Shown here: piece after piece, positions 13,134 to 60,451 of the stretch
Numbering within the stretch: the stretch's first letter is position 1
How the letters are laid out: the number at the start of each line of letters is the position of its first letter
Assembly: GCA_001643675.2 (NCBI GenBank)
Contig: LSRY02000014.1
Coordinates: 1,302,001-1,366,000 of the forward strand
Length of the DNA stretch: 64,000 nt
Source: Monocercomonoides exilis PA203
Lineage: Eukaryota; Protista; Preaxostyla
Reading direction: 5' to 3'
The notes under the pieces: model-generated
What the model saw: only the letters and a program-made list of their open reading frames with translations
Databases searched by the model: none
What the model was told of the DNA's origin: nothing
Translations under genes and position numbers: made by a program

Positions 13134-13202
13134 ATCAATTAAAATTCAAACCGAAATATTAAACAAAAAAATATGAATTAAAAAACAATCACATAAGTAT
13201 TT

Positions 13203-13600: not shown

Positions 13601-13829
13601 CACATGTTCAAAATTTTCTGAAAAGTTCCTTTTGTTAAAATTTCAAATATAATAAATATTACATATTTCGATCAAATTTCTGCTTCCACTCACCAAATTT
13701 CATGAGAATGAATATATTATTCTTATCAAGAATTTGTTTTCATGACAGTGAAGTATTTTTTGTGGGAGCAGAAATTTGATCGAATATGACATTTTTTCTT
13801 TATTTGAAAATAAAACAAAAGGAACTTTT

Positions 13830-13840
<11 letters not shown>
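13601..13840. mobile_element. Foldback element family C, copy 2
   Basis: GAAAAGTTCCTTTTGTT...CATATTTCGATCAAATTTCTGCTTCCAC / GTGGGAGCAGAAATTTGATCGAATATG...AACAAAAGGAACTTTTC, followed by a ~40-nt poly-A. Confidence 0.8.
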
Positions 13841-13874
<34 letters not shown>

Positions 13875-14219
13875 CTTTGTTTCCTTTCTTTTTTCCTTTG
13901 AGATCAAGAAAGGTGAACAAAACACGAGGAAGTGTGATTTTTTAAAAAATCTTCAACATAAATCATTTGGAAAAAAATTAAAAATTAAAAATAACAATGT
14001 AAATTTTTGAATTCACAACAAAATATTACAAAAAATAAATAAGAATATATTTGATGAAATAATGTGATTATCAATTGCAATAAGTTACACATATTTTTTC
14101 TTTTTTGGAATGAAAGTAATATTTTTTTAAAAACAGAATTAGGATCAACTTCAAAAACAATTATTAAATTGATAATTTTTTGATGTGAAAAGCGATGTGA
14201 TCCAAGTATTACTATAAAT

Positions 14220-14743
14220 TCACTTTTCATTTTGTGAATTATCAGGTTTAATGCTCGAATTGAATTTGCTTTCAGCAGATGCACATAATTCTATAACATT
14301 GGCGTAATCTGACTTGTTTGCGGAAAGCAGCTCACGCTTTTGATTCACATTTTGCATTCAAAATATCGCAATATCAAACATAAAAAAAAATAAAAACATA
14401 ATAATTAAATCTTGAATGGCTAAAGAACAAAAAGAAACGAGAAACCTTTTTAGCTGTCTCAGTGAAACGTTTAAGTCCGGATGAATCAAACATCGGGATA
14501 AATGACTTTATTGCACCAAAACACGATTTCTTAAGGAATTGTTTCGAACGAAATTGGTTAAAACGTCAAAAACAGAAAAAAAAAATTATGAAAAAACGAT
14601 ATATTAATGCATCGTCAATGTAACAGATTGTTAAATAAACAAATGAAAATATACAAACCCTCACTTCTGGATTTGTATCATCAAGCAAAATGACAAGAGT
14701 ATCATCAACAGCTAAAGCATTGCTGACATAGTTCCGATCCATC

Positions 14744-14801
<58 letters not shown>

Positions 14802-17800: not shown

Positions 17801-18630
17801 CGACTTCAGCTTCAATCCTATCTCTTCATCATATGCTTGATTATTCTTAACCATCACTCCAATGCTTTCAAGCGCTTCAACTTTGACAGCTGCCTTTGCT
17901 TGACCTGATCTTAAAATTCCGTGCAATTGGTTAAAAATCAAATGAAGTCCGGTTTCTTCAAAAGCCAAGCGAGATAACAAAATGTTTGACATATGGCATG
18001 CAGCCTTTTCCAAAAAGTGTTGATTTTGTTCATAAAAATTTTCATTCACAAAAGCACAACAAACCTTTTTAACTTCAACTTCTTTGTTTATTGCACAAAA
18101 GCCAACAAATTCCATGAGATCTTTCACCATTGACGCAAGCTCATCATCACTACAAAGCTTCGCAACTTCAACCATCATCACTGCTTCATTCTTCTGTTCG
18201 TCTGTAATGTGATAATCGCTATCTTTCATTTTTTCTTTAAAAACAGGCATTAAAATTGTAGCTAATCCATTACAATACAAATGACATTCAACAATTAATA
18301 TGTATAATATATTCCGCACTAAATCGCTCCATATAAATCCATTTTTTGATTGTAACAATAGTGCAGAACAGTTTTTCATAAAAGTTAGAATCAGCACATT
18401 TCCTTCCGTTTCTTCAAAAATAACAAACATATTTCGTTGCTCAGTTGTTAGTTTTATATATTTCTTTAGTTTTATATATTTTTTAAAAATTATACAAAAA
18501 TATAAGCAAAGAAAACGGTTCAAACATTTAATTCAGAAAAAATTGCTTCCAGCTTTTTCTTTAAAACACTCTTATTTGCCGGATCGAAAGAAATATGTTC
18601 ATCGCCTCGTTTTATAATTGGCGTTGCCAT
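14220..18630 (-). CDS. DNAAF5: HEAT-repeat protein, probable dynein axonemal assembly factor 5 (HEATR2); ~1167 aa, 7 predicted exons
   Basis: Phase-consistent exons 18630-18526, 18439-17638, 17482-15279, 15063-14956, 14742-14659, 14529-14446, 14336-14220. Motifs recalling HEATR2 occur in order: 'LLSLLGDNIPEIQ..KRWGEQY', 'CCTLIGLFFAPESYLPLL', 'KWRIG..AEIR', 'LWKRFEDKKDVIR', 'LVILLDDTNPEVR'. Poly-Ser insertions are present. Confidence 0.65.
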
Positions 18631-18736
18631 GTAAGTTATTCGGTTGCTCTTAATAAATAATTATTATATTTCAACCCTTTTATCGGCAATACTAAATTAA
18701 AGGCAGTTTGATCTTATCTTTTTAGAAAGAGATCTC
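18631..18736. promoter_or_regulatory. Probable bidirectional promoter / 5' UTRs
   Basis: Only 106 bp separate the inferred divergent ATGs at 18630 (-) and 18737 (+). Confidence 0.6.
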
Positions 18737-24700: not shown

Positions 24701-27700
24701 CTGGATGCAGCCTTCACCTCGCTTGTCTCTTCCTCTTCATCTCCTTCCTCGTTTCTGTCTCCTTCCTCTTCCTCTTCCTTTGCAGCTCTATCGCCCACAT
24801 CACTGGCGCTCCCTTCACCACCACACCTGTCACCTCAGCCTTGCATCCCCCGCCCTTTCTCTTCTGTCATGTCGCACAGAGTGCCTATTGTCCCTCCTCT
24901 GCCTCTGGCTGTGCACAAGATGCAGTACTACTCCCTCTTTGACTCACTCGCCGGCATCATCCCTTATCTTGCACACTACGCCCCTTCTGCAACTCTCCCA
25001 ATCCTCACATCACCTGGCTTCATCCGTCTTATCCTCCACAAACACGCTCCAATTGCAGTGACAGCCTCACTCGCACTGCAAAGGGCAATGACGCTGCTTC
25101 CGAACTGCCGAGCATCCATCGTGTTTGCGATGATCGACGAAATTCAGCACTTGCCAGACACACTCAGCTATTTATATCAGTCAGATCTTTCAGCCTCGTC
25201 TTCATCTTCTGGAGGCTCCTTCTTCTCCAAAAAGAAAGGCAAATCTGTTGTCAATGAGAGCGAATCACAAGCTTCTAACCAAACCTCCTCTGCAGCCGTC
25301 TCATCCTCACGTGTAGGCCACTACTCACTCTGTTCCTGGAACTACTGGCTCGACCCGTTCAACCAGATGACAATCAAACCAGGCGGGACAGAAGCAGAAC
25401 ACAGAGGGAAAAGCATTCGCGACAAGATGCTGATAAGAGGCAAAGAGACGGACCATCCACTGAACAGCTCAGACAGAGGAAGCTCAGTCATCCAAGCGTC
25501 GATTCAGCCGGGAGCAGCATCAATGCGCTTCCTCCACTCGAACGAGCACGCCGTGCTGGTGATGGTCGCCCAGCTGCTTCTGCTGCTGCAGCAGTGGGAC
25601 CGCTCGCTTATTGCTGAGCTGGCTGCACTGAATGCGAGGCTCTCTGTCACTTTGTCTGTGCCCAATGTATCTCCTCTCTCTCGCACCATCCAAGAGACCA
25701 TGGACAGAGCTAGTCAACAGGGTGATGGAATGTACCAGACTGCTGCTCCCATCACTGTTGATCAGACTGTTTCGACTCTTTCACACTCAGGCTTTGGGTT
25801 TTCGGTTGTCGCATCTGATGCTTCCACTCCGCTGAGCGGGATCAGCATCACGTCGCGTGCACACATTGTGGCTCTGCTGCAGCTGCTGCAGGCGGTTGAT
25901 GGTGTTGCCCTGTTTCTCTTGGGCCATGCTTCTCCATCTGCACGTGCTGTTCTCTTGCGTTTGATCAGACAAACACATCTTCTGCAGGAAAGCGCGATTT
26001 CTCTCTATGCAACAGCCAAACACGCACACATTATCCATCTTCAGAGACGTATTGAACTCTGCCAGAAGGAGCTTACAGCTGTCAGAGGGTTCATGAATGC
26101 AGCAGGCAAGAAGCAGAGCAACGTGCCTGCATATCAGTCGAGCATGCAACGGAAGAACACAGCACTCAACAAGAAACAACTGGCACAGATGCAACAGCAA
26201 CAGCAGGAGCCAGCGAAGAAAGAGCACCGAATGGACAGACCGTTCCGCCTGCTTCTGTCACACTTGAAGCAGATGCTGCTGAAGGAGACGAACCAAAGTC
26301 TGCCAGTTGTTGTGCACCCGACTCTCTATGACGTCATTAGTGGGCAGCGTTCTGAGCCGTTCACTCTGAACAACAACTTCTTCACTGGAGACGAGCGGTG
26401 GGTGCCTGGCTCTTCGTCACGCTTAGCGAATCCAGCATCGCTTGCACAAGTGCCAACAGTTTCGAGTGATGTTGTCATCGGAGACAAGACAGCTCCTTCG
26501 TCAAAGAGCATCACTGCCAGCATTCAGGCATCAAACCCACCACTTGCATCAACTGGATCGTACAAGCGCTATTCGCAGAACACACCAGCTGCATTCCTTT
26601 CTCGCCCTCGTGCGCTTCTTCCTCCATCACTGGGTGATGCCCCACAGTCGCTTTCGCTCTCAGCTGTTTTGTACGGAGGACGACCCGTGACAGAGCAGAC
26701 AATGAACATTGAGCAGTTCTCGGGAACTTACATCCCTCGTCCTCTTTCAATGGGAGGAAATGCAATGAGCTCCATTGGCAGGAGAGGCGCAGGAATGATG
26801 GGATCTGGTGGTGGAGGGCAGTCAATGATATCTCTGTTTGGTGCAGCGACCTCACCACCTGCCATCTGCTTCACACCACAGACAGTCAGATGGCTGTCGT
26901 TGTTAGCAGCTCGCCGTGCAGCTGCAAAGAGCTCATCTCCATCGGCTGGTTCAACATGGGTGCTTCTGCTGCCTTCCTTGCGTGCTCCAAGCAGCCCTGG
27001 GCAGCTTGTACCTGAAGAGCCGCTGGACGATTTTGAGCAGTGGATTGCAATGGCCATCACATCTTCTAGCAAAAAACGCTCACCAGACAAGATCCGCCGT
27101 GATGTTGCACAGATGTTCCATTCATCCGACAGCGCTAATTCTCCGCTCAGCACTTCTCCATTCGCATTGATCAGAGCTCTGAGGGCGGCACAGGAAAAGC
27201 CGCTGAAAGGGCTTGGACGGAAGATTGTGGCAAGCGCATTCCGTTCTCTGAACCAGACAGTGTCTGCCACACCCGATACATCTGGTCTGAACAGCGGGAA
27301 TCCAAACGGAGACGACAAGCCGCTTTCACTGATACCTGCACTGGGATCGTTTATCACCGCAGCAACAGGTGTTGGAGACAAAGGAAAAGACGGAGACAAG
27401 AAAGACGGAGACGAAAACGAAGCATTGGCAGTGAGTGGCTCAATGGGTGGAGTTGGAGATGGAGCAGGAGATGGAGGAGAACAGGAAAAGAAGAAGAAAG
27501 AATCATCACCATTTGAGCCTGTTGTGACAACTCCATCAATCCTTTGGATTGTTGCTGTGCTGGCTGGGATGGATACGTTTATGGGTGAAGCAGATTTCGG
27601 AACAGATTACAATGAAAGCGAAGAAGAAAGAGATTTGCGAGACAAAGAAATGCACAAATACAACAATGTTGCCCTGGTGAATGCTGGTCTGCAAGCTGGA

Positions 27701-30700
27701 AAGACGCTGGAGGAGGCAAAGAGAGCTGTTGTTGTGAGTGATGAAGAACCAGGAGAAGGAGACAAGAAGAAAGGAGGACGCACAAAGGATGATGCTGTTC
27801 GTATTGGTGGTGATTTGGGGAAGAAAGAAAGCGGATGGCGAAGGTTTGTGCGGTGGCTGTTTGGCGAAAAGGGAAACAAGATTCTTCAGCTTGGAAAGAA
27901 AGAAGAGAAGCAGTTCAATCATTTGCTTCCACTGGAGCGTTATTCATCTCTTCATCTATCGTCACTCGCTGACATATTCACCAACAAGCACTCACTGGAG
28001 ACGCTGTGGTCGGCCGTGCTGTCAGAGATTGACCAGCAAGTGAGCGTCTGTGGATCGCGTGCCACGCTGCGTGCATACCACAAGGCAGCTGCTATTTATA
28101 CACGGCACATCACTCGTGTTCCAGAGGACTATTCGGCTGCTGTGAAACTTGACTCTGCATTTGAGGTGGGAATGCGCTCGATGGTTGGAAACACACTGAT
28201 TGGCACGCTCACCCTCGGACCAGTGACGTCTGCAGATATTGTAAAGCTCTCTTGGAACAGAGATGCGAATAAAGCGCTTCTGACACATGCGCCACCTGCT
28301 GTCAGAAGGAAAGAGATGAACAGCTGGCGATCTTCGAGACATGCTGCTTCTTCTCCACAGGAACAACAATCATCGTCTTCTTCTTCATCTGAGCCAACAG
28401 AAGTTGAAGTTCGATCAGATGAAGGAATCGACAACGAAATGCCATTTGGCGAGTTTGAATGGACGAGGCATCCGCGCTATCCATTCACACCTGCTTTTGC
28501 GACAACCTCATTTGCGCAGTCTGCTGTGAGTGTGGATGACAATGGCTATTCTTCAATTGCACTGGAGCGGTTCTCCACAAAGTATTTCAATTCTTATGTA
28601 CCCAATGTGTTCTTTGCACTGTGTTCTCAAATCCTGTCATTCCAATATGCAGCATCGTTGGCACTGTCTCATGCTCATCCGCATCTTCACCTACCCATTT
28701 TGACTCAATTTGAACAGTGGGTGAGCACATACTTCCCACAAACAAAGAAGGACGAATCTCTTCAACAGGCAGATGCAAAGGGAGGAGCAGACATCACAAA
28801 GGATGCTGCATCTAATGCTAAAAGCCACTTGAGATTTGTTCAGTTTGCAATTGTTGAAGATCTCATTCCGCGTGTGTTGCGTCTTGTGGCTATCAACGAC
28901 TCATTCACTCTGTCTCTTTCACTCACACCTGCTCCATTGATGAGGTATTATCTGTCATTGTGTGCAGCTGTGATCAACCACCCACTTCTGCGAGGCTCCG
29001 TTCCTCGTAAGACCGCCTTTGGCAATGTGCTTGTTCCTCAGCGGGTACGTCTGGCATATCGAAGAGAACTGGGGAAACTGCAGAGAATGAAAATCGGAGC
29101 AAATGAAGGAGTGGATGAGGATGATTATGTGGCTGTGGATGCGAAGGATGCTGCGAAATACAGAAGGCAGCAAAGACGAGCGGGTGTTGTTATTCGGAAG
29201 ATGCAGATCTCGAAGAAAGGGAAGATGGATGCAGAGATGATGGATATGTCTGATGCCGAAGAGGACATATACGAGAACGATTCAGAAGACAGCGGAGAAA
29301 ACGACGAGGACGCGAGCGATGAAGAGCTGACTGAAAGTGAATATGGAGCAGATTTGGAAGAAATGGATGCGTACGCCAGAGGAGCAGCAGATCCAGATGG
29401 CATTCTTCTGGCTGAGAAGGACCAAGTCAAGCGAAAGGGCAAAGAGAAAGAAGGAGGAAAAAGCGAGCTTCCAATTGCAGCACTTCTTGACAGTTCAGAA
29501 GATGGGAAGAAGGATACACCTGCGAATTCGCTGCCATTCCTGGGTCCGTTTTCTCAGTCCCTGTTTGCTGGAAAGGGAATGCTTGTGTCGATATTCCCTC
29601 AATATGCTACAACTGACGAAGGAATGGTGGATCTGGCGAATGCCGTTGACTTCTTCCTGAATGCACAATCTGCAGCACCAAGCCAGAAGAAAGCAGGAGC
29701 AGCAGGTGGAAGCCAGTCAGCAATGCTTTTGTCTTCCATTGCGAATCTGTTCGGCCTGATTGGCTATCCAGCAAATCCACTGTGGTTTGTTGTGCGTGCG
29801 TCTGAGTCAATTGCTGCATTGGCTGCACTTGCACGAGCACTCACAACTGCGTTCATTCCGCCAAACAGCCTCAGACTCCACCCGCCTCGCCCAGTTGTTG
29901 CGACAGCAGAGACGTTGAATGAGTACACGGTTGCTTGCGGAATGATCCCATCTTTGTTCATGTTCCAAACAGATGTAGCAGATGCTCTATCGACTCAGCT
30001 CAGTGCATTGTCTGTGTTCCCGTTTGCATCCACAGGCAGCAGCGTTTCATCAGTGTCAGATCCAGAGGAAGATGCTACTGAGTCGAGCACTGCACCTTCA
30101 CTGTATGCGCCAGATGCTTTCCCAAATCCAATCCACATCTCCACTCTCTTCTCTCTTTACTCCTCACTCCTCCAGCGCTGGCTGTGGCGTGTGAACACGG
30201 CTGTTTCAGGCGATCTCTTTGGCCATCCTCTGTCTGCTTTAACACTTTCAGTTGATCCTCAGACACTCCGTGGTGCTTCTGCTGCTTTGGCTGACTATCT
30301 GATCGTTTCAGCCACAGGAGCTGAGCCGCGTGCGCTGCGCAGTGCAACTGTGGAAGGCGTTGCACAGGCCATTGCAGACACTGTTTCCACTGAGCCTTGT
30401 GTGATCAACACGGCAAATGCTTCGTTCAAGGCATATGCACCAAAAGGGTTGCCTGTGCTTCCAGCATCGACTGATGCTCTTTCCTTTGAGAATCCTTATT
30501 CATCGTCGTATTCTGTCTTCTCCACGTCTTCCTCTGCTGCGTCTTCTGTGTATTCCACCACTGAGCAGCTGAGAAGGAAGCTTCCAACAGAAGAGTCACC
30601 AGGGCAAGAACTGTTTGATGACTTAATCCTGATGAGAGATCCACTGGAAGATGCGACGTTGCCTTCATCCACACCACTGACAGTATCAGCTTTATCATCT

Positions 30701-39700: not shown

Positions 39701-42700
39701 GCAGAGGAAGAGGTGCAGAGAGAGAAGGAGAAGAAGATGAAGGAAAGAAAGAAGAAGAAGAGCAGCGATGACTCAGATGAAGAGTCGAGTTCGGAGTCGG
39801 AATCTGAATCTGAATCTGACGAAGACAGCGATGAAAAGGGCAAGAAAGGCAAAAAGAAAGACAAAAAGGACAAGAAAGATAAGAAGGAAAAAGCGAAAGG
39901 AAAGAAGAAAGACGCTGAAGAAGCCCCAACTGCACTCGAAGAGAAACCAGATCCCGCAGGAAACAACGCACCAGCAAGTGCCGAATCCTCCATTGTGCTG
40001 CCTCCTATCCCAGGAAACGTCAACGAGTCGTCTGTCGTTCTTTCCTCGCTTTCCTCCAACAAGATGCTCGACCAAGCTCTGTCTGGCACTGTCTTCCACA
40101 CCTTCCAATCGGCACTTGCACCGATCCTCCCACCAAACTTCCCTGGTCTGATTCCATATCTCATGCGCGCACTCAGATTCGGCCCCAGACTTCTCTCTGC
40201 ACGTGGCGGGCCGTCTCTGGCTTCACTCAGCGAGACCTATTCGCCTCTTCTGATCAATGGAGCAGGCGAAAAGGGTGTGTTTGGCTCAAGCGGAGGGGCT
40301 GTGGATGCAGCAGTCTTTGGTTCAACACGCTCACCAGCTACGTCAGTTGACACAGAGAATGTACTGCTGTATCGCAATGGTGTGTGTATTGATGCACGTC
40401 AGCTGGGCGAGAGATATCTTCGCAGCATCTACCAGCCGTTCATCCACATGACCCACTTCGACCGCCGCTGCCGGAACGAGCACATTCGCGTTTCATCATC
40501 TGACTTTGTGGCTTCAGCTTCTTCAACAGCTGTGGTGAGGAATGTGATGAGGGCGTCGCCTGCACAAACTGCTATTCAGACAATTGCGCTGCTGCTTGAT
40601 CCAGAAATACCATCGACATTTGCGTTCCAGTCGAAATCGCTGCTAACAATCATAGAAGAAGATCCAAACATGAAGTTGATTGGAGCACCAGAGAAGGAGA
40701 AAGAGAAGGAAAAAGAGAAAGAGAAAGAAAAGGACAAAAAGAAAAAATCTTCGAAGAAATCTTCGAAGTCCAAGGATGAGGATGACACAGACACAGACAC
40801 TGATACCGACTCCACCAATGACTCAACTGCAGACGAATACGACAAAAACTCTCCATTTGTTGACCCCTCAACGAATGTCTGGACCCACCGCTGTGATGTC
40901 ATCCTGTGCATCATGTTCTCTCTCATCCCTGTCATCCACGCATCTCTCGTTCGCGACTATACAAACGCCATTCACAAGGAGACAGCCAGCAGAGTCGGCA
41001 CATTGCCACACCGCACAGACAGCGTTGCCTCAAGCGGCGATCCGACGACTGCTTCTGCCTCTTCTTCTTTGGCTGCCACAGCCACACACGGAAAGCGGCT
41101 GACGTCTTCTCATGCGCCAACACCTTCAACAGTGACTGCCTCCAGACTGCAAACAGAACACATGGCAGTGGTACATCCTGTGCCGTCTGCGCAACATCCA
41201 CAGGATCGTCTTCTGGCACTGTATGACGCCACTTCCATTCCACCATTCAACTCTGTCGCTTCTGTTCTGTTAGATTCAAATGCTGCATCTTCCATGGCAT
41301 CCTCAGACTCCTCTGCCTCTGCCGCAGCCCTGAGTGGCCTTCAGCTTGATCCAGAGAAGATGCTCCATCCAGGCGCATTCACCATCCCTGAGCCACGCGC
41401 CTCGCTTATCCCTGCGCACAACGCCACTGCTGCATCTATGTCTCTATCTGCATCACCTGTCCTGGCACACTCTGCCTGGGCACCTGTGTTCTCATCTCCG
41501 CTGTTCGGTGCCAGGCTTCTGACGTTTATTTCCTCAGCGTCTGCTCGTGCTGCCTCAGCCCCGTCTTCACCGTGGGCGAGAAAGACGCTGATTGCAGTGG
41601 TGCTGTCGTTCCTGTACAAGACACTTGCGATGGGCGAGAGAAGGGAAACAGCAAATGGCGGAATCGATCCAGCAGACAGAGACAAAGAGAACGAAGAAGA
41701 CTATGAAGACTTAGAAGATACTGACTTGGACATCAACTCAGACAACATGCTCCCAGACTCGATGGTGAAGAGCATCAAATGCCTCATCTCTGCTCTGCTC
41801 CTGGCAATGCACCCACACACACATCCACTGCACTTCTTGGTGTTTGCGGTCGAGGCGCTGTCATATGCAGTGGCTGATGCAGTCTCCCGTTCGAACAAAA
41901 TATCAAAGGAGCAGCTGGCAACCAGTCTGAAGCAGGCAGCGTTGGCACCATTCTCATTTGGTCTGTTTGTTGCCAAAGGAAAAGAAGAGAAAAGCTCATC
42001 AAAAGGCAAAAAGAAGAAGTCGAGTGACGATTCTGGTGACGCAGAGCTTGCTGATCCCGTTTTACAGCGCAAGACATCTGCTGCCAATGCACCGCTTCCA
42101 CCGCTCTTCTTCCTGCTTCCATTGACAATGCTGTTTGACGCCTCTCCTCTTCTCTACGGACCTTCAACTCTACTCACAGCTCGTCTTCTCCTAGCAATGC
42201 TGCCTCCTTCACTTTCAGGTTCATCGCATTTCCTGGCTGAGACACTAGCGCCAATCGCTTGCAGGGCACACATCTTTGCTGCTCCTTCACTTTCTCTCTC
42301 TCCCATTGCTGCTTCCTCGTCTTCCTTGGCCAACACATCCAGAATGTTCCCTACATCAACTCCTCTTCCACTGCCGAAGACTGGCTCTCTTGTGGCTGAT
42401 GTGTCTGTTGCTCCTTCTGTCGGCTTCTACGTGCCTGCCTCCACAAGCATACCTGCACAGAGCTCCCTGTCCTTATCAGTTGCATCACTTCCAGCACAAA
42501 CATTGAGATCTCATCTGAAAAAAGCGAGTGTGGACTTTGTGTACACGTTCTCTGAGCTACCGAATGCCACCGCGTTTACCACACCGCTGATGCAGTGTGT
42601 GGAGCTGATTGCTGACTATCTCACAACAAGCGCGTTGGATGCAGAAGATGCGAAGAAGACGAACATTGCGAAGAAATCAATGCAGACAATGCAGAAGAAA

Positions 42701-45700
42701 TCCAAAAAGGACAAAGACGGAAAGAAGAGGGCAGGAATGGATGACTCGTTCCTGCGAATTATTCTGTCGAAGATCGGCGAGATTATCAACCAGCAGACAA
42801 CAAGAACATCACTCACTGCTTTGTCGCCGTTCTTCTCACCACTGATATTCGTATCGCCATCTTCAATAACTTCTACAAACTCCATTGTATCTGCTGCTGC
42901 CACATCTTCTTCCTCATCATCATCATCATCATCAAGTATGTCTGCAGCTTCACTTGCACAGAGCATTGTTCCGTCTTCATCTGATATTCTTGTCCGTATT
43001 GTTACCCAAATGGAACGTTTATCTCAAGCTGTGTTCCTCCTTCTCAACACCACGTTCTTCACTCCTGTTCCCCTCTTCAAACACACCCCTCTCACAACCA
43101 TCTCCAAAGCACTGCCTCCGCTTTCTCAGCAAACAGTTGCGTTGTATTCAGCTCCCAGCGGAGCATCACAAAGTGCTTCGTCTTCAGCTGCTTCAGCAGC
43201 ACAACCAGTGCCTTCTTCTGCTGCTGTTGGAGCTGGCTCTATTCCTCTGCCTCCTCCTCCTCCATCTTCTTCTCAATCATCTTCATCTGTTTCTGGAAGT
43301 TCTGCAGCTGGAACCTCATCATCGTCATCATCTCAAGCTGCCCAGGCTCAATCACCTGACAGCAGCGCATCATCCACAGTTCTGCCGCTTCCGACCATCC
43401 CGACCTCGTCTTCGATGTACTACCAGCACCCGTCGTATTCCTTGGCGTCGTACCTCTTCTCGTTCCCTCCCTCCGACGGCGAGATTCGATCTGGATCTTC
43501 AGTCCCCCCACCTCTTATCGGGATGATGCCCACTGTGGAGTTCTGTGTCGTCTCCTCCTTCTTGTTCCAGACACATCTGGTGTCTGTCCCAATCTCCATC
43601 CGCATCAAAGATCAGGCAGCAGTGGCACGCGATGCCGCAGAGAAGAAGATGGCTGCCGAAGAGAAGAGAAGGAAAGAAGAAGCTCGCGCCTCAGCCAGCG
43701 GAAAGGACAAGACAGGACACAAAGCACACCATTCATCCAGTGCTACTAGCCAGTCTGCAGCTTCAGCATCGCTCATGGCGCTCTCTGCCACGCATTCATC
43801 TTCCTTCTTTGCGTCGTCTCCGTCATTCCTTCCAGGTGTCTCTGAGGAGGCGCATGCACTTTGCCAGCAGGAAGAGGCAGTGCTGTCGATGATCATGAAG
43901 ACACCACAGATCAACGAGTCAGCAGTCGAGGCTATTATGAAGAGCAGGCCAGCACATATTAGAAAGCAGCAGGCAATTATTGCTTCGCTTCTGAACAGGA
44001 AGTCAGACTTGAAACTGAGTGGAATGGGAATGGGCGCACTGAACAGCAAAACAAAGGTCAAAGAAGCAGAAAACGAAGCAGACAAACCAGAGGTGCTTGT
44101 TGAAGATGATTTGGACTTCGTTCTGGATGTGGATGCAGACGGCGCCGATGCGAAAATCACGAAGAAAGCGAAAAAGGGAAAGGGAAAGAAGAAGGCAGAT
44201 GGAGGACTGCAAGGAGGAGTGAACACGAAGTCATCGCGTGTGTCGTCGAAGAGAGACGAGCTGTTGAGGCTGGGTGTGATTCTGCAGCAGAGAACAGAGC
44301 TGCTTCGAGATGAGGTTGCAGCACAGGCTCGTTTGGCGCGTGTTATTGAAGAAGAGAAGAAGAAAGAGCTGCTGAAGAAGAAAGAGAGAGACCTCATCCT
44401 GAAGAAAGAGATGAGGCAGCTGGAGGAGTCTAAGAGGCAGTCTGTGGGAGATTTGAACAAGCTGACGAAAGAATTGAATGATTTGGTGAAGAAGCGAGAT
44501 GATCTCGAAAGGCAGGCGACGATGCTGGCGAACTTTGTGGATGTGATGATGGAAGAGATTGCACTCACACGAAGAGAAATGAATGCCAAACAGAAGCAGC
44601 TGCAGTTACTTATAGACGGAATAACAGCAGAGGACGAAGAGAGAGCGGGAAGAGCAACAAGGCTGGTTGGCAAGGAAGATAAAGAGAGAGAGAAGGAGAA
44701 GGAAAAGAAGAAGAAGAAGAAGAAAGCAAAGGAAGGAGATAAAGAGCAACTGATGAAAGGATTTGGATTGGGAGGTATTGTTGGTCGTGGCCAGAAGCAG
44801 ATTGAGGTGGAAATCAAACTGATGAAAGGATTCGCTGAAACAGTCAGAAGAACACTCCATTCGAAATACGTGGCATCGCTGGGACAGCTCTGGGAACTGG
44901 TAAGGCCGTACATAACATCCATTCCATTGCCATTTGAGTCGAACGCTGCCTCATCTGCTTCAGCATCTTCCTCCACAACACCATCGACATCTATGGCTCT
45001 GCCTTCCACGCTCCCTCAACCGTTGGCAGAGCTTCTGTCAGTTGGATTTGTCGATATCAGCAAGTTCAGTTATCCAACTCTGATGGCATCGCTTCCACTT
45101 GTCTCGCTGCTTCCTAACAGAGTGAGCGAAACCTGGTCGTTCCGTTCGAAGATCTACGTGCCTCCGCCAGCAGCGATGGCCATCCTCGACAACTTCCTGG
45201 CTGACCCACGAAGAGCGCTACCTGAGTTCACACTGTTTGTCTATCGCTACTTCGACCTTGCGCCGTGGCTGCTGTTTGTGTCGCTGGTCGACTGGATGAA
45301 CGATGAGATGGTGCTGGAGGCGATCCAGGAGGAAGAAAGAGCAAATATGGGAATTGCACCAGAAGCGACAACAAGCACTGCTGCTTTGTCAGCAGCTGCT
45401 GCCAGACTGAAAGCGCGGAAAGTGGAAGATGCGCAGAAGAGAATGAAGCAAGGAGCACAGAGAATAATACGGCAGTTCCTCAATCTATCGCCAACACCAG
45501 CAGGAAGCACGGGAACTGCCCTGTCGCAGCGCAAGTACCTAGTGCCTGGGTCGCTGGCTGCGCTGATCACCGCACTGAACGTTCCACTCCCCGCTCTTTC
45601 GATGCACTTTGCACGCAACGCCCATTTGGACTACACTCTACGTGCAGTGATTGTGCAGACGCTGCGTAGAGCTGCTGAGCTGGGCGTGTTCAACGAGACA

Positions 45701-46222
45701 GAAGCTGAAGAGACATTCACGCTTCCATATTCCACACTGCGCACGAGCAAAGCAGTCGCCGCGGCTGCTGCTGCGTCAAAGTCGCTAACACCATTTACCA
45801 CCATTCTGAGTGATTGGGAAGTACCCAATGTAGAGTACCCTGCCCTGTCTGTTCCATTGAGCCAGCTGGCCACTCTGTTTGATCCGCTGATGTTTGTTCT
45901 GTTTGAGGCGCTGAGAGGGCTTGTGCTTCCTGCGTTCATTGGAACTAAGTCGTTCAGGAAGATCATTAGAGCACGTATGGAAGAAGGCGCCTTTGGAGTG
46001 CCAGTGCATCAGAAGGCAGGGACGATCTGGGTGGAAACGAATGCATCGCTGGCAGAGAGGAAAGAGAGGAAGAAGTGGACGAAGAATGGAAGGATGATGA
46101 CAGAAGAAGAAGCAAGAGAAACAATACAGAAGTCGTCGAAGCAAAGTGCAGATGCAACTGATATTTTGTGGAATGTGGGAAAAGTGTACGATATGGACGA
46201 TATAACATTCAAGACTGATTAA
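18737..46222 (+). CDS. FRY: Giant Furry/Tao3/Mor2 (MOR2-PAG1) family scaffold with C-terminal coiled coil and RGS-like domain; ~8982 aa, 6 predicted exons
   Basis: Phase-consistent exons 18737-18823, 18887-19120, 19177-19481, 19578-19908, 20071-20190, 20351-46222. Furry-like blocks occur in colinear order: 'SLFDSLAGIIPYL', 'LHKHAPIAVTASLALQ..RASIV', 'QLLLLLQQW', 'VDGVALFLLGHASPSARAVLLRLIRQ', 'IAPWAEHADL', 'LWERLA', 'NLTLVVRFVLS', 'YLPVLL', 'FIHHIVHIL..QWA..VQVYRAL', 'FPGLIPYLMRAL'. The CDS itself is near certain; the family call rests on recalled motifs. Confidence 0.75.
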
Positions 46223-46887
46223 ACAGCGATGCATTTATTTAATATTTTTTTTTTCAGTTTATTTTAATAATTTGATAAAATAATAATTATTAACTTTTGT
46301 AATTGTGATTGTTATTGTTATTCAATTATTAAATTTAATATTTGAATTTTTTCGTTGATCCTTTTTTAGTTTATTTGTGTGTTGTTTTACGTTGAAGCTA
46401 TGAAAAAAGATATATTCTTTTGAATGTGACGTTGTTTATAATTGTTATACTTAGATTTATTTACTTGTTCAACTGTTTCATTTTGTTCAATATCTTATTA
46501 TATCATATATTCTAAAGCATTTATTCTTGTTGTGTTTGTATTCCACTTTGTTTTTATTGTTTTTTTGTTGAAATTTTCTGTCTCCCTATAAACCTAGTTC
46601 CACATCATTGTTAAACTATTTTAGTTTGTTGTTAACTTTTATTTGATTTTCTTTGACTTTTTTTTTCAAACTTTGTGTTGCTTTTATTGTCGGTTGTTCA
46701 AAAAATAAAATAAAATAAAAAAGAGAAAATTACTTTTAGGAAAATAATCCAAATATTTTATTTCATATAAACACGCAAGCTGTTTGCAACATCAGATCAA
46801 AACAGGAGAAATTAAATAAAGAGATAAAAAAAGTGTTTCTATTTTTGAAAAAAGGAAGAAGAAGAAGAAGAAATGTTTAATAACTTG

Positions 46888-48237
46888 TTACAATTCTCTG
46901 ACATCATCGTCGTCATCATCATCGTCGTCGTAGTCATCATCATCATCATCATCATCCTCGTCTTTCTTTTGATTCTTGAAGAGATCCTTTCCACTCATTG
47001 AGAAAGTCTCTGGCTTCTCGTATGGATCATACACATCTTCATATCTCTTTGTGGGCTCCCAGTTCTGCTTCACAAACGTGCGATACTCTTTCAAATCGTC
47101 TCCAATGAAGAAGTTGTCGAAAATAGACCCGCTTTTCGGCTGATAGATTTCAATCCCCACATATCTTATCTTCTTGAATGCAGCATTCCTCCTGGCCTTC
47201 TCCCAGTCTGGATTCGGAATGCGTGGAGCCTTCCATTCTCCTTTATATTCTGGGTTCTTTACCAACGGCGGCATCCAGACGCCTCTGTAGCGCGGATTGG
47301 GAATTCGTGGGGCACTCCACTCTCCGTGGAGCTTCTCTTTCCACCAGATAGGCTTCTTCGCCTTGTGGTCGACAATTGTCATCTCCTCCTCCCAGTCATC
47401 TGGCTTCTTTGCTTTCGGATCGGGAATCTCAGGCAGCTCAACCCAATCCTTTGGTTTTTTTGCATCTGGGTCAGGAAGTGTCGGACCATCAAATGCTCCA
47501 GGAAAATCAACATACATTTTCCCACTTCTTTGGACTTTGTTATCGATTCGTATTTCATAGGAAAGATCTGGGAACATGATAATAGTAAACATATGAGTAC
47601 GTGTATCTTTTTCCAAGCGAAGTGGTGTTGTGTGTTGATATTCGTTTCCATGTTTTTTAAGAATTAATTGAACACGATCAGAATGTCCTTTATCCTGATC
47701 TTGGCCAAACATAATGTAATATGGAGTTGTTCCATCAAAATCGGTTTGGTTAATGCCTTCTGGTAGTATTTTCACATAAGAACCACCGACCTGAATATCT
47801 TGCTCGTTTTTAACCATGTACGAAAATATAAATGTTTTGTTATAAGTTGAAATTGTTCTTCCAATATCAGCAGAAATTTGATAATATCCATCATCAGTTA
47901 TTGTTTTCATTCCTTTGGATCTTTCGCGATTTTGGCATTTTTTAGGTGCTTCAATTGCCCATTCTCCTTTATAATGTTTTGTCTTATTAACTGCAAGAAC
48001 CCAACGATCTTTCCATTTATCTTAAAAAACATATTTTCATAGCCAATTAATGATCACAAATTTCACATTTTTAAAGAAAGCATAAAAATACAAATGATCA
48101 ACCAATAAAAAAATAAAGATTAAAAATGATTGGAAAACAAGAAAAAGTAACTCCTTCGAACCTCCGTCAGCAAATTCTTCTTTCCAAATAATCTCAGATG
48201 AAAAAAATGATATCAAAAATAGAGAAAAAACGAGCAT
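46888..48237 (-). CDS. CALR: Calreticulin-family ER protein (divergent), 2 exons
   Basis: Signal peptide MLVFSLFLISFFSS|EIIWKEEFADG. Intron 48161-48021 (GTTCGA...TTAAG) joins in frame to DKWKDRWV. Contains 'GGSYVK', 'YYIMFG', three PDP.AKKP..W and three G.W..P.I.NP P-domain repeats, 'KSGSIFDNF', an acidic tail and C-terminal VREL. Confidence 0.93.
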
Positions 48238-52699: not shown

Positions 52700-55600
52700 C
52701 TACACATTGTTTTCCATCAATTCTCTCAATGATTCTTTCACCTGTGCCAATGTTAATCTTTCGTTAGGCTCGTCTGCCCACATCTTCTCCATCAGCTCAA
52801 CCAATTCTTCTCCTTCGATTCCTTCTGTCAGCGGTCGCACTCCATTCCTCATCATCTCCTGCGCTTCTTCTGCATCAAATTCACTCAGTGGCTCTTCTCC
52901 TGAGGTCATTTCATGGAGAATCAGTCCAAGTGTGAAAACAACTGCTTTTTCTATTCCATCATCTTCAGCTTCAGGTGCCTTCCATCGCTTCATTTCTTCC
53001 TTCTCCTTTTCATCCTCCAATTCCTCTGTCAAAACATAGATTTCATTTACGTTTCCTTCTTCAACAAAGATTGCATATGGACACAGCTGTTTCCCCATCA
53101 TTTCCATTCTTTCGTATCCAACTGAAATCAAATGCTCAAACAGCGCTGCAACTGCCAAAACCACTTCTTTCCCATCAACAACATCCATCGCTCTTGTTCC
53201 CAGCGTGAAATCACCTTGAACTGAATGAATGACCGAATGCAATGTTTTGATGTTCTTTTTCTCTTTCTCTCGAAATGGCTTCTTTGCTGATATCACATTG
53301 AGTGAATGTGATTGTGAAGCTCCAGAAACAGAAGCATTCTCGGAAAATTGCAATGGAGGTTCCAAATCTGGAAGATCATTTTCATTCAGAATTTCATCAT
53401 TGCTCATTGATGGAGGCTCTGGAAGATCTTCTTCATCGTTGTCAATGAGAAGTGGAATTTGGCTTGTCATCCCTTCCAGCAGTGTGGATGGCATCTCACT
53501 CATCTCAAAGCTCCCTCCATTATTTTCCCTTCTTCTCCTCTCTATCTTCCCCATTATCTCCTCATTTTCCATTCTCTCTTTCTCAACTTTCTTTTCTGAT
53601 TCTTTCAGTTTCTTTTGCAGAAACACAACCACCACAACAAACAAAATGACAAAAATCATAAGAACAACAATGCATCCAACAAAGGCAAATAAACTCCATT
53701 CAATACCGCTCTTTTTTTCGGTGCTGCTCCCTCTGTCACTTTCATTTATTTCTCTTTTTCTTTCATCTTCGTCTTTTATGTTGATATCTTCTTCATCTTT
53801 TGACTGAAACTTGCTTGCATTTTTCAGAATGAATGATTTTGTTGATGAGGGAGATTTTGCATTCCCAAATATAATACAAACGCTCACCTCGATTTCATCT
53901 CCACAACTGCTGATGAGATCTTTTGCCACACTTCCTTCAACTTCTCTTTCCGATAAGAATCTATTTGAATCAAATTCATGTTTTTCAAACTCTTTCTCTT
54001 CTCCTTTCCTCTTCACAACTGAGAATGACAAGTTGCACGGAACAAGAAGCATCCCTTTGAATATCAATTTCATTCTATCTGTCTCTTCTTTTGCTTCCAC
54101 ACTCTCCAACGCAGGAATGAAGAATGATGAATCTCTCTCAGAAACAATCCCTTCAAAACTGCACCCTTCATTCAACATCCAAAGAGATGTGTTCGGCAAA
54201 ACTCCATCTCCTCCTTTCAAACTCATCACATTCAATGTTCCAGAATCTGAACAGATGATATTTCTTCTCAGTGATGGATATCCTTCAATTGATGGATTGT
54301 TGTCAATGAACTCTCCTTTCTCAATTATCACATTTCCACCTCTCATTGTTATTCCACCTTCTGGTGAATTTGTGATTGTTGAAACTTTCATCATCACAGA
54401 ACTCTTCACAACATCCACGACAGATCCAGACCATCTGCACATCTCTTCTTCCTCGTTCAAATATTTCTCATTTCTTTCCTTTGAACTCCCATCGAAAATG
54501 CAACTGTCCATTTTCACATCCAAACAATCCTCCAATTTCATCAATTTCCATTTTGTGGTCTTTGAACTGACTCCACCTAGTGTGCAATTTGCCAATTGAA
54601 TTGTCTTTTTCATTGACAAGCAAGATATCAATGATTTTTCATTTCCTTCAACTGTGATATTTTCTGTATTAATATTGATAAGTTCCAATCGCCCACATTC
54701 ATTTATTTCAACAAGCGAATGAGAAACTGTTGAATTGCTGATCTCAAACAAATAAATCACTGATGGAAGTGATGATGAAAGATATATTGAAGATTTTTGA
54801 AGAATGAGATTTGATATTGTGCATCCATCAAGTTGTAATTCTCCTTTTGTCATTTTTATTGTGTGAAATCGAATATTTGCTAATCTTGTGTTTCCTTCTC
54901 CAGCCGATTGTTTTGAGTCAAATGAGCAATTTATTATCTCAAGAATTCCTCCTTCTGGTGATACAAATGATTCATGTTGAGAAATGAAATTCGAATCAAA
55001 CGCAAAGTTCACTCTCACCAACGAGACTGTTCCTGCTGTTGTTACTAATGCTTCTCTTGTTTTTTCAATCTCTGTTTCCACTTCAACTTCACACAAATCT
55101 CTGCTCTTTGAACTCAAACTCATTTCTTTCAGATCAAATTCTCTTTCAATCACACTCTTTTCAACAACAAATATCAGACTCAGAATATCTGAGGTCAAAT
55201 GTATCAGGCCATGATCAATTGAAGCACATGGAAGAGTTTTGGTTCCACACTGTTTATCATTCAATCCATTCACACTGCTCACAATAATCGTATCGCTCTG
55301 ATGAATAGTTACAAATCCAATCAGATTTATATCTTCTTTGTGTTCACAACTATCAATTCCATATATGGCATTAATTCGTGAATAATGATTCTCTCGAAGA
55401 TCAAATTGAAATTGACTTTCATTAATCTGCGATGATATATTGAAGCATTCAACAAAAATATCATTCCCCACTTTTGCTGTATTTGCGGAGAATATTATCC
55501 CCACAAATGTGAAATCAAGAAACCCTCTTTCCTTTGTTGCCAGATAAACTCCTCCTCCTTTCCCATCAATGCAGCTGCAATGACTGACAGTTGATTCAAT

Positions 55601-58600
55601 AATCTTCATTGATCCAGATGCACCCAATGTAAAGAATGTTGCCCCTCCTTTTTCACTTGATTCTGCTTTATCTTCTGTGATGTTGCTCGAATTCACAATC
55701 AAACAAATCTTTTTGCCACTCTTCAACTCCAAAATGCTTGCTCCATTGTCACTTCTCTTCACTCCTGAAAATGATGAATTATCAATATTGAGATTCATTT
55801 TCTCGTCCACTTCATTTATCTTTGTTGTTGTTGTTGATTCTGGTCCTTTGATCAGAAGAAGACATCCTTCGGTTTCATTCAACGATTCCACTCGAACATT
55901 CATCAAATTGCAAGAAACTCCAGCGTTGTTAATAACAAAAATACTGTTTCCAACATTGCATGATTCCATCGACAAATCATTCACTTCCACATTACCTCCA
56001 ATCACATCTACAAATACACAATCAAATCCATTGTTCACTTCTGCATCTGAATGGAATGAACATTCAGTTATCACCAATTCTCCTCTTTTGTTTGAAATAA
56101 TTGTTTTGGCTGAATTGCCAAATCCAGATGTCAGTTGCAGTTGGATATTTGTCAATTCAAGATGTTCATCATTTTCCATGAAATATTCCAGTAGATTTCC
56201 AATTGCCTTTTCAAAATTCAATATTGCTTTTGTTCCTTCTTCTCCCATTGAAGAAGCCTTTTTGATCTGATAATTGGACATGTCGAATGAATCTTGAACG
56301 ATGGTTGATCCTTCAATCTGAATTGTTTTCTTTCCTTCTCCATCGTTCATGTTTTTTATCCCTTTCCACATCGTGAAGCATGGTTCTTCTTCACTTCCAC
56401 ATCTTGCAACATCAAATCCGCCCAATGAGATAAATATCTCAGTTGAGCTGTATGGAATCAAAAACATGAATAAATCCTTTTCTTGATGATTGTTATCACT
56501 TCCTACAAACAGAGTTTTGTCATTTTTCATTGATGAATAATCGAAGTTGAATGACTCATTTGTGACAGTTGTATTTAAATCATTTGTTGAAATGAATATG
56601 TTCTTCCCATATTCTGCATCATTTCCATCAAATACAAGAGCATCAATAAATTCAAATTTTGCACCTGCTTCAGTCAGAGAAAGAAAAATCCCACCTCCCT
56701 TCCCATTTGATCCATTTGCCGATGGCGCGCAACACTTTTCAAATCTTGTTGATGACACATACAGTTCGGACGGATTCTCCAATGAAACTGACAGTCCTCC
56801 CCCTCCTTTTCCATTCTCACTCACCTCACATTCAAGGAATGTGCAATTCTCAATTCTCATTGTATCTTTGCTTCCATCTTCATTTGAATCAACACAAACA
56901 CATCCACCGTCTCCTGCTCCTCTCGTGATGTTCTCAAATGAGGTGTTCTTCAATGTGATCGATGAGCATTTCTCAACCTGAATTGCTCCACAACTTGAAA
57001 AATCACAATTTGCAATGGAGCAGTTCTGAATCGCAGCTGATCCACTTGTTGCAATCTCAATCAACCCTTTTGCTCCATCTGTGTTTGTTTGATTCATAAT
57101 CACCTCATCTATCAGGCATTCACAACTTCCATTCACAACAATCACACACCCTCCAAATCTCACATTCCCCACATTCCCCCCACAATTCATCCCAACTATC
57201 TCCACTTTCCCTCCACTTGCACTCACAAACGCATAATTCGCAGAATCTACTCTGCCTCCCATCTTTATCCTGCAATCCTCAAATCTCAATGTCCCTCCTG
57301 AAGAATGAACAAATGATGATCGATCCCCAATAGATCCTCCCAATTCAAACAATATCTCGGTGAATGTTGATGAAATACTGTTCATCACCAGTGCTTCTTG
57401 CGTTTTTGTTCCTGTTGTCTCCACTCGCAATCCAATAGCTTTGTCACTCGAATCTATCTCATATGACTGCTCGCTCAAAGTTATTTCCTCCTCAAATCCA
57501 AATATACCCGCAAGCCTCACAATTCGTTTCGAGTTGGGAAACCGATACTCAGCAGCTTTTTCAATTGTATTGCACGGATAATCAGCAAAACCGCACAGCC
57601 TGAAATCATTTCCATTTGCTTTCCCACTCACAAATACAGGTGATTGAAAAGTTCGCAGAAACAAGGCGAGTGGAATGATCATCTCAGGATTATCTCTTTC
57701 AATTCCGCTCAACTCACTGAAATCTGTCGCATTAATCCCAATTTGGGGATGAAATTCAATTGAAGTGCTGTTGATCACAGCTGATAAATCCTGTGCTTCC
57801 ACAAACACATTCTTTCCCTTCCAGGCATCACATCCATCAAAGACACAAAGTTCAATCCTGAAGCTGCATTCGTTGCTCAGGCAAGTCAGATACATTGCCC
57901 CTCCTTTTCCTTTCTTTGATTCATCAGCAGGCGATGAACATGACTCAAACATGACATTTGAATTGTCTCCAATTCGCAATTCGCTTCCTGTTTGCATCGA
58001 AATATGCATCCCTCCACCATCGCCATTTGCACAAGAGCAGCTTTTCAGCGTTGTGTTTGATAAGCTAAAAGAGCACCCAGAATCCAATGAACTGGAGAAA
58101 ATAGACCCACTTCCAGTGGTTCTTGTGATATTCTCAAAGGTCACATTCACTATTCTCTGTGAAATTGTTGAAGATAATTCAACTTCACTGAAGATTGGCA
58201 CTGAAAGAACCATATTCCGAATCTCCACATTTCTCAGTGAAATGCAATTCATATTCAACACAAATGGTGATGAATCTATTTCACTCCCTCTTGATTCAGG
58301 TGCTGGGGATAAAATGAGAACATCAGACAAAGAAAGCACTCCTGCGGAAGAGCTCACCACAAAAAGTCGTGGAGATGGATGTGCTGTTGAATCATGTTGG
58401 ATTTGAATTGCTGTTATCATCAAACTCCCACTCGACACGCTGAATAAAACTGAAGAGGCTTCCAACGATTGTGTTCGAACAATTGAGTTAAAATGGCTTT
58501 CTCCAGAAACTTCAATGTGCTTTTCTCTACACTCAATCGAAGCAAGCGGAACAAACATGGAAGCTAACAGCTTCACTCCTTGAACCGTGGCATATCCTGA

Positions 58601-60451
58601 ATTCCTCACAGCTCTTTCGATAGTTTTGCAGGGTTTGTCTTCCGATTTCCCACAAAGCAACTCAGCATCACTTCCGGTGCTGGAAACATAACGCTTCAGC
58701 AACCCCTTCCCTAACCAGGAATCATAATATGTTTGACTGCTATTGAACCAAACTCTTTGTTTTTTTGTGGTCGAGTACGATAATTCAAATGGACAGTCAA
58801 TCAAATTTGGATAAATAACATAAACATCATGTCCATTTCCATTTCCTGCAGTGTTTCCATCAAAAACGCAATGCTTCATAAAAATAAAATGTTTGCCAAT
58901 TTGCATGTTTATATACTGATGTATTTGAAATGCTCCACCTCCTAATCCGGCTGTATTCCCCTGAAATGCAGATTCTTTCAACAGAAACGAAGTATCAATT
59001 TCGCCATGAACAAATAAGGCTCCTGCGTCAGATCCTGCTTTGTTCTTAAAAAATGTGCATTTATCGACCAAGAATGGATCAACTTTCTTTCCGTCTCTTC
59101 CAAAAATCGTCACCAACCTTATAGCACCTGCATAATGGTCGCTAGAGTTGCAATTATCAAAAAGGCATCCTGTAATCAATATAAAACCCTCTGAAAAATT
59201 ATGACATTGAAGAGCACCAACCCCATCTGACGTTGAATAGCAACAAGAAAAATTAGAATCTTGGACAGTCACTCCACAAGCAGCTTCTGCATATACAGCA
59301 CCAATATGAGGAGCTGTGCAACTTCACGAATACATGTTGATAGTTGTTTATAAACAAATAAAATGAGGAAGAAAAACAGAATGAATATAAAGAAATGGGA
59401 AAAACAATAAAATGAAATTATAAATCTTTATCGTTTGTGGAATTATGTAAAAAGCATACGAAATAAATTCACTCCTTCGAACGGTTAGTGTAATTGGCAA
59501 TTTTGATGCAAGAATTGCTCCTCCAACCTCTGGAGATAAGCAACCATCAAATGTGTCGTCTTCAAATGTTTCTGATTGGGTCAGAACTTGGTGCCCTGAT
59601 TCTCCTGAATAGTATGCATTTGCATTTGCATTTCTGATGCATCGTTGATATGTGTTGTTGGATGAGCATAATGTTGTGCCTTCAGTGTTTATTGATTGAA
59701 TAACACCTCCATAAAACACATCGCAAACTTCACAGAACGAGCATCCTGAAATCGAATTCAAACTCTCTGAAATAGAAGAAGGAATTCTGATTGTTTGTGC
59801 TGAAGCGATCGACATGTTGCAAAATGAAGATCTTGCCAAATTCACATTTTCCTTTCCTGATGAAGAAAGAAACGGAGAAGATAGCAGTTGCACAGACGAA
59901 AAAGCAGAATTCGATATGCTCACTCTGTTTGATGTTTCGTGTGTTAAAAACGCTTCAGTTGGATGGGAAGCTATCAATGAAGGAATTCCATTTTCAGCAG
60001 CAGATGTTGTGAGTGAAATGTTCTCACAACACAAGCAACCACCAGTTTGCGCGAATGGAGGAATGCATCTTTTTGCTGAATATTTCATCGAGCAGCAGCT
60101 CAAAGACACAGAAGATTCGTAGATGAAAAACACTGAACTTTTCTCTCTTGAATAGATCTCAACATTCCACACTGAAAAAGTGGAATTCATAATGTGCATG
60201 CTCACATCAATTCGAGTTGAACTCCCGCAGCGTTGACTCTCTCTCCCATCATTTTTCTCCATATCCCCTGGTGGATTGTCGTTATTGTGCAGCATCTGCA
60301 AAGAATTTGGGGGAATAAAAAGAAGTAATTTTGATGTTTCCCTTGCTTCCTCATTCTCTTTTGGACAGAAATTATCCGTCATACCTCCACATGTTGCCAT
60401 TTTGGTAATAAAAGGCAGAAGCATAGCAAACAGATAATTTGATGCTTTCAT
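52700..60451 (-). CDS. Type I membrane protein: beta-helix-type Cys/Gly-rich ectodomain, single TM helix, cytoplasmic degenerate kinase C-lobe; ~2537 aa, 2 exons
   Basis: Exon 60451-59460 (MKASNYLFAMLLPF... signal-like) and exon 59321-52700 are joined by intron 59459-59322 (GTATGC...GAAG) in phase. GGA(I/L/M/F) repeats, four 'CG....PC..I/M' modules, TM 'WSLFAFVGCIVVLMIFVILFVVVVVFL', and tail 'RWKAPE..VVFTLGLILHEMTSGEEP..GVRP..MWADEPNER'. Confidence 0.9.

Follow-up and report, generated by a model that had tools for sequence, protein, structure and literature searches.

The window analysed here is a 64,000-nucleotide stretch of the Monocercomonoides exilis PA203 genome (contig LSRY02000014.1, positions 1,302,001 to 1,366,000 of the forward strand), and a giant gene within it encodes a protein whose C-terminus, about 300 residues long, is probably a very divergent RGS-homology (RH) domain that ends an oxymonad scaffold and serves as a non-catalytic docking module. 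The gene is a single, uninterrupted open reading frame (ORF) on the plus strand at 20309-46222, encoding 8,637 residues (8,680 for the whole open frame in the ORF list), in which conserved helical islands alternate with low-complexity inserts. The protein belongs to a family with members of 6,000-8,600 residues, of which M. exilis has two paralogues and Blattamonas nauphoetae one orthologue or more. The domain is apparently a very divergent form of a known fold, placed in a new architecture and retained in an organism that apparently has no G-protein alpha subunit (G-alpha).

All four motif strings that the preliminary description of this DNA had quoted from the C-terminus were present, in the order given there and in one ORF, in the translation of 44222-46222. 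They were followed in a three-way alignment of the window copy with the paralogue at C29 and the Blattamonas orthologue. Block 1 (ILDNFLADPRRALPEFTLFVYRYFDLAPWLLFVSLVDW, 45170-45295, ORF residues 8288-8329) corresponded to helices alpha1-alpha3 and carried the pattern L.DP...F.LF......L..W..F.S..D, which was conserved in all three homologues. Block 2 (GAQRIIRQFL, 45452-45481) corresponded to alpha4, and the A and I of its A..I were invariant. Block 3 (NAHLDYTLRAVIVQTL..., with HLDYTLRAVIVQTL within it, 45617-45691), presumed to be alpha5/alpha6, was weakly conserved among the three, and in the paralogue model the corresponding stretch had a predicted local distance difference test score (pLDDT) below 50. 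Block 4 (45875-45979, with LFDPLMFVLFEALRGLVLPAFIGTKSF within it) corresponded to alpha7-alpha9 and showed the strongest conservation in the C-terminus, with the pattern F.P.....F...R...LP.F.G...FR. Block 1 matched the paralogue in blastp with an E-value (E) of 1.5e-4 and the Blattamonas sequence in tblastn with E 1.6e-6; for block 4 the respective values were 8.6e-8 and 3.2e-5. The invariant pattern over the whole alignment was D, F.LF, S, A..I and F.P.....F...R...LP.F.G...FR, and the core hydrophobic pattern was kept in alpha1-alpha3, alpha4 and alpha7-alpha9. Judged from the sequences, the motif pattern exceeds chance, its first and last blocks matching both the paralogue and the Blattamonas orthologue.

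Three inserts lie between the blocks. Insert A (45296-45451, 52 codons) lies between alpha3 and alpha4, at a position that is long in the C29 paralogue as well. Insert B (45482-45616, 45 codons) was mostly specific to the window copy. Insert C (45692-45874, 61 codons) precedes alpha7, at a site with a shorter insert in Blattamonas and none in the C29 paralogue. Their G+C content (GC) was 0.51, 0.60 and 0.53, respectively, compared with 0.22 in the downstream intergenic DNA; around the giant ORF, GC was about 50% in local coding DNA and 22-35% in the spacers on either side. None of the inserts contained a GTAWGT splice site. Together with contigs from RNA libraries that crossed the region without joints, the coding-like GC and the missing splice motif show that the inserts belong to the protein; their reading as unspliced in-frame introns was ruled out on these grounds. 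The C-terminal tail and stop codon (45980-46222) were not conserved and had no alignment to the tails of the paralogue or the Blattamonas protein. Directly upstream of the domain, the translation of 44237-44749 (plus strand) gave a highly charged, heptad-like stretch, evident from its charge count and ending in a GA-rich Lys/Glu run. An equivalent stretch precedes the domain in the C29 paralogue, and from its composition we infer that the segment is a probable coiled coil.

Exactly one paralogue was found in the M. exilis genome, at C29 161782-180909 on the minus strand, with an open frame of 6,375 residues. It matched the window protein in 14 collinear blastp blocks, among them RGS-like blocks 1 and 4, and the RGS-like domain occurred in only these two copies in the genome. 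With the conserved middle islands as query, BLNAU_87 of Blattamonas nauphoetae was retrieved at E 7e-49; it was collinear with window residues 218-6389 over 19 matches. The genome of this species has been described (PMC10703272). The BLNAU_87 gene model, listed as 'hypothetical' on JARBJD010000001.1, ends early at 4,943 residues, and the frame runs on without a stop, spanning 11254 to 29448 (6,064 residues). In the unannotated 3' part (25281-29448), eight tblastn matches to window residues 6595-8562 were obtained, both RGS-like blocks included. Read from the genomic sequence, the 3' end of BLNAU_87 is therefore probably mis-annotated. Scaffold and domain thus shared one ORF in all three genes of the two species, which speaks against an artefact of assembly or annotation. 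These two homologues were the only ones retrieved. Nothing outside the genome emerged from word-seeded searches, whether the query was the C-terminal region of the window protein or the domain of the paralogue, and a scan of metagenome contigs of the Joint Genome Institute with the three-way domain alignment gave 430 pattern matches, none of which was confirmed.

The C29 copy is nearly free of inserts (about 160 residues) and was therefore a better test object than the window copy. In this compact copy (160-186 residues), the RGS family PF00615 was the sole Pfam match, with E 0.036-0.061 and 14-15 bits (E 0.036-0.14 and 12.9-14.9 bits over all runs with this copy), below the gathering threshold of 23.9 bits; the alignment covered profile positions 4-116 of 117. 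Since RGS had been named in advance, the E-value over 24,736 models understates the significance, and a one-family test would give about 1e-6. When the same copy was submitted to the ESM-Atlas feature search, the ten best named hits were all RGS clusters (one family/clan); the top cluster had a score of 0.86, 170 shared features and a recognition of 2553. A profile search of PDB sequences with the three-way alignment gave a spurious match, summed over repeats, to a designed WD40 protein.

Structure prediction was carried out twice with AlphaFold2. The first run, from a two-sequence alignment, reached a pLDDT of 38 and returned unrelated Foldseek matches with no RGS among them; it was used solely as a negative control. 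The second run modelled the paralogue copy from three oxymonad sequences, with no templates and no RGS sequences in the alignment, and reached a mean pLDDT of 55.5 and a predicted template modelling score of 0.47. Residues 11-60, which aligned to the starts of RGS domains, had pLDDT 62-78 and the alpha7-alpha9 part 70-86, so that residues 11-60 and 151-186 together spanned 62-86. Judged by its fold matches, this model conforms to the nine-helix RGS fold with its terminal and bundle subdomains, although DSSP assigned only seven helices of at least four residues in it. In a Foldseek search against the PDB, the top 50 matches were all RGS or RH domains (Axin, RGS8, RGS1, GRK2, SNX25, SNX13 and others), with Axin as the best match (probability 0.99, E 0.04). 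The failure of the pLDDT-38 model to retrieve RGS folds shows that these matches were not driven by sequence alone. VIA-align was run over 48,161 representative chains with no Foldseek prefilter. At Z of 5 or more it returned 14 chains, 13 of them annotated as RGS/RH, and the first unrelated chain followed at Z 4.8. The highest score was that of SNX13 (Z 8.5, 134/145 residues aligned); SNX25 (7.6), RGS3 (7.4), RGS7 and RGS4 (both 7.2), Axin and an Entamoeba RGS-RhoGEF (both 6.9) and p115RhoGEF (6.3) also scored, as did RGS9, GRK2 and GRK1. When the low-confidence parts were trimmed, the superposition on an RGS covered 74 residues (2.6 A, Z 7.5). An ESM-Atlas shape search with the same model placed the Axin family on top. 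We consider it very probable that the C-terminus of the paralogue has the RGS fold, and, by sequence homology to it, the window copy likely has this fold too. The one chain at Z of 5 or more without an RGS/RH annotation, second in the VIA-align list (9fqr_Ou, Z 7.6), is an unnamed chain of the bovine sperm doublet microtubule (axoneme) and probably represents an axonemal protein with an RGS domain.

Both the PF00615 and the Foldseek searches, which the preliminary description had proposed as checks, thus returned RGS matches with the paralogue copy, and the outcome named there as refuting, that neither profiles nor structures would match an RGS fold, did not occur. The claim of an RGS-like C-terminal domain split by inserts stands in so far as Pfam, ESM features and fold searches support it through the paralogue; direct recognition of the window copy did not follow.

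The preliminary description had also noted that the Glu-Asn motif and the Asn needed for GTPase-activating protein (GAP) activity appeared replaced and that the domain might be non-catalytic, and the alignment bears this out, as the columns concerned differ among the three homologues. We take the G-alpha-contacting and GAP residues of RGS4 to be Glu87-Asn88, Asn128, Asp163 and Arg167. Placed by eye against the RGS4 sequence, the Ser-Glu-Glu-Asn turn read SLTA, DLAP and NSTE across the three copies, so that the Glu-Asn pair was TA, AP and TE; the Asn128 column held T, H or was not alignable, and the Asp163 and Arg167 positions were hydrophobic or Gln. The G-alpha-contact columns therefore vary even from one homologue to another. 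In the bundle subdomain, the large inserts occupy loops expected to point towards G-alpha. A six-frame search of the genome, made exon by exon, for G-alpha (PF00503) gave only partial, switch-region matches in small, Arf-sized ORFs, at profile positions 156-262 or 18-73, the best ones at 156-262; the top ORF was a 183-residue Arf-like GTPase. A six-frame search for canonical RGS domains (PF00615) elsewhere in the genome found none, and nothing specific was found in the literature on G proteins in Monocercomonoides. The variable contact columns, the inserts in G-alpha-facing loops and the lack of a genomic partner argue for a non-catalytic RH-type module. With neither G-alpha nor a canonical RGS in the genome check, the link to G-alpha signalling that had been proposed for this protein is unlikely.

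Several results weigh against the assignment as an RH domain. Pfam gave nothing at E<=10 for the window copy, whole or in pieces, and the Blattamonas copy had no PF00615 match at that cut-off. Searches of PDB sequences with phmmer and with profiles (paralogue domain and two domain alignments) found no RGS protein, and phmmer with the C-terminal 420 residues against 1.84 billion representatives found only the query itself, as an 899-residue fragment model from a Logan contig. The quality of the model was middling: a pLDDT of 55 was reached by two of the five models, and the central bundle stayed below 50. The top Z of 8.5 falls within the range (below about 13) that, by VIA-align's own note, helical bundles can reach through a common arrangement. 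Because only the paralogue copy was folded, the RGS character of the window copy rests on homology to it. To these are added the RGS4 placement, which was made by eye and was not tool output, and the G-alpha search, which was run without a eukaryotic positive control. Such results could be explained by an unrelated helical bundle whose likeness to RGS arose by chance or convergence, with AlphaFold drifting to a common arrangement; this would fit sequence signals that all lie below formal thresholds, blank PDB sequence searches and a model with an ill-defined centre and a mean pLDDT and Z as low as those obtained. However, three independent methods (Pfam, ESM features and fold searches) chose RGS and no other family, 13 of the 14 chains above the Z cut-off were annotated as RGS/RH, the 14th probably being one too, before the drop to 4.8, and the confident parts aligned at 2.6 A. 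We therefore regard an unrelated bundle as quite improbable, and retain a divergent RH domain as the reading of the C-terminus.

The remaining explanations concern the scaffold as well as the domain. According to the preliminary description, the scaffold was a Furry/Tao3 protein, and the C-terminus would be a functional G-alpha-binding RGS/RH module linking G-protein signalling to a Furry/NDR-kinase scaffold. The supported RGS fold speaks for it, and RH domains of RhoGEFs and GRK2 bind G-alpha without canonical GAP residues. The ESM feature search with a 1,200-residue conserved stretch of the paralogue, which returned a mix of HEAT/ARM families, also listed MOR2-PAG1_mid at rank 4. However, none of MOR2-PAG1_N, _mid and _C matched the window protein at E<=10, or the C29 paralogue or the Blattamonas orthologue at E<=1. 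Genome-wide, MOR2-PAG1 domains occurred in only two giant ORFs, at C20 (7,135 residues) and C25 (8,152 residues), which were collinear with each other. Kinship of the window family with this Furry-like pair was rejected, as no blastp matches were obtained at E<=1e-2 to 1e-3 and island profiles gave scattered, non-collinear noise. Since the real Furry-like genes are those of C20 and C25, no link from G-alpha to NDR kinases can be drawn from this locus. With no detectable G-alpha gene and contact columns that are not conserved, a G-alpha-binding module on a Furry scaffold is very improbable, its Furry part being largely refuted.

Another explanation holds that the family is an offshoot of HUWE1/Tom1 in which the HECT domain was replaced by the coiled coil and RH domain, giving a substrate-binding or regulatory pseudo-ligase. 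It draws on a conserved island of the window protein (residues 1551-1627, 24959-25189, plus strand) that is 42% identical to paralogue residues 1020-1096. Paralogue residues 1022-1137 matched DUF913 (PF06025), the ARM-like region of HUWE1/Tom1, with 27-29 bits (cut-off 24.7). No other DUF913 match in the genome was as good, and 18.3 bits (E 0.0012) remained without the low-complexity tail. Along the protein, the island is found some 16-18% of the way in, roughly the relative position of DUF913 in HUWE1. However, DUF913 was matched in a single family member out of three, neither the window island nor the Blattamonas island giving a match; DUF908 was not found at the locus and HECT was absent from the window protein, with HECT domains found in other ORFs of the genome. 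No blastp similarity to the window protein or the paralogue was detected for the HECT giants at C22 and C5 (the two best, and the only ones compared), and their kinship was rejected. Profile searches of PDB sequences, HUWE1 structures included, with two large conserved scaffold blocks were blank, as were Pfam searches with the Blattamonas protein, both over the full ORF and over the N-terminal part of the gene model. A HECT-less HUWE1/Tom1 offshoot is unlikely, and a distant HUWE1-like ancestry of the scaffold is possible but equally improbable. The HEAT/ARM mix in the ESM features is a lead only, suggesting that the scaffold is probably a helical-repeat protein; we leave it as an unclassified oxymonad family, probably of helical-repeat type, to which the divergent RH domain is joined.

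Transcript evidence for this joining was consistent. Contigs of four RNA libraries from one study were collinear with the genome over 41500-46694 with zero joints, and a Logan contig covered 43023-46253. The RNA-library contigs were interrupted only at the GA-rich repeat 44673-44734, which the mapping method skips. In one RNA-library run, a contig left the giant ORF at its 3' end and crossed a 665-bp spacer of 22% GC into calreticulin (46223-47400), reflecting either overlapping 3' untranslated regions or genomic DNA in the libraries. The libraries may thus hold DNA, and the support for a continuous transcript is weak and unproven.

The genes neighbouring the giant ORF were eukaryotic. A DNAAF5-like HEAT/TPR protein is encoded at 15234-18523 (minus strand) by a gene with one or more introns; a calreticulin exon at 46888-47910 (minus strand) is convergent with the giant ORF; and in a 2,190-residue ORF at 52700-59272 (minus strand) nothing is recognisable except half of a protein kinase domain, the C-terminal one. 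A Pfam scan of the window protein in pieces of 4,300 and 1,000 residues gave low-complexity noise only, with no family past threshold. In the N-terminal part of the giant ORF, 20600-20850 encodes dipeptide-like runs of Asn, Gln, Ala and Pro (NQNQNQ, NANPNPNADANANA) and poly-Gln, which are typical of the low-complexity inserts throughout the 8,637-residue protein. Many giant uninterrupted ORFs of 7,000-11,400 codons were found in the M. exilis genome, including the two Furry-like genes and several HECT ligases (e.g., C20:925621-947028, C25:638433-662891, C22:400804-431778, C5:1558532-1592749, C8:~388k and C36:~661k). Conserved islands with long low-complexity inserts in these ORFs suggest a genome-wide inflation of large proteins. 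The HECT giants at C22:400804-431778 and C5:1558532-1592749 are paralogous and collinear with each other. At the N-terminal end, the open frame of C22 extends about 2,600 codons beyond anything in the C5 copy, and its first Met is at codon 434 of the frame.

Among known systems, the RGS domains of SNX13 and SNX25 (PDB 7wf6 and 7sr2) were the best structural matches (Z 8.5 with 134/145 residues, and 7.6-8.2), and they likewise lie within larger multi-domain proteins. Some sorting-nexin RGS domains, such as that of SNX14, reportedly have no action on G-alpha. Unlike SNX13 and SNX25, the oxymonad proteins have no PXA, PX or Nexin_C domain, share only 16-19% identity with them, reach 6,000-8,600 residues and, in the window copy, carry three large loop inserts. 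The Axin RH domain (PDB 1dk8, 1emu and 7y1p), which topped the Foldseek and ESM-Atlas shape searches, is an RGS fold that acts as a non-GAP peptide-docking module for the SAMP repeat of APC. By contrast, the oxymonad proteins have no DIX or beta-catenin-binding region and a far lower Pfam RGS score; to our knowledge, neither APC nor a Wnt pathway is to be expected in a metamonad. Helix order and the core hydrophobic pattern were shared with the R4-type proteins RGS4, RGS8 and RGS16 (Z 7.2-7.6), from which the oxymonad domain differs in its sub-threshold Pfam score, its replaced contact residues (by the by-eye alignment to RGS4) and the missing genomic G-alpha. Furry/Tao3/Mor2 proteins are also giant and largely helical, have a C-terminal coiled-coil region and are encoded in this genome by very long uninterrupted ORFs, but the window family has no MOR2-PAG1 domain. 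With HUWE1/Tom1 the family shares one paralogue island that passes the DUF913 threshold, but no DUF908, UBA, WWE or HECT.

On these grounds, the domain would be an RGS-type nine-helix bundle in which the terminal subdomain is mainly kept and the G-alpha-contacting central bundle is variable. In the window copy, the fold would be interrupted by the three coding inserts of 45-61 residues, all placed in loops. By analogy with Axin, SNX13/14/25 and GRKs, we infer a non-GAP role, either in docking a partner peptide or in packing onto the scaffold, and the probable coiled coil in front of it could pair two chains. More tentatively, and at somewhat less than even chances, an RGS-homology domain may have survived in a lineage that apparently lost heterotrimeric G proteins altogether, kept as the conserved end module of an oxymonad-specific scaffold family of 6,000-8,600 residues perhaps derived from a HUWE1-like ancestor that lost its HECT domain.

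The RH domain is the first recognisable domain in an otherwise unannotated family of enormous oxymonad proteins, giving a handle on their function, and it shows how much divergence and splitting by inserts an RGS fold can undergo and still be detected. If the absence of G-alpha holds, an RGS-type domain has been kept here for a role independent of G proteins. If true, the finding would bear on the origin of the non-GAP functions of the RH domains of Axin, sorting nexins and GRKs, and the oxymonad proteins would offer a natural example of an RGS fold that is fully independent of G-alpha.

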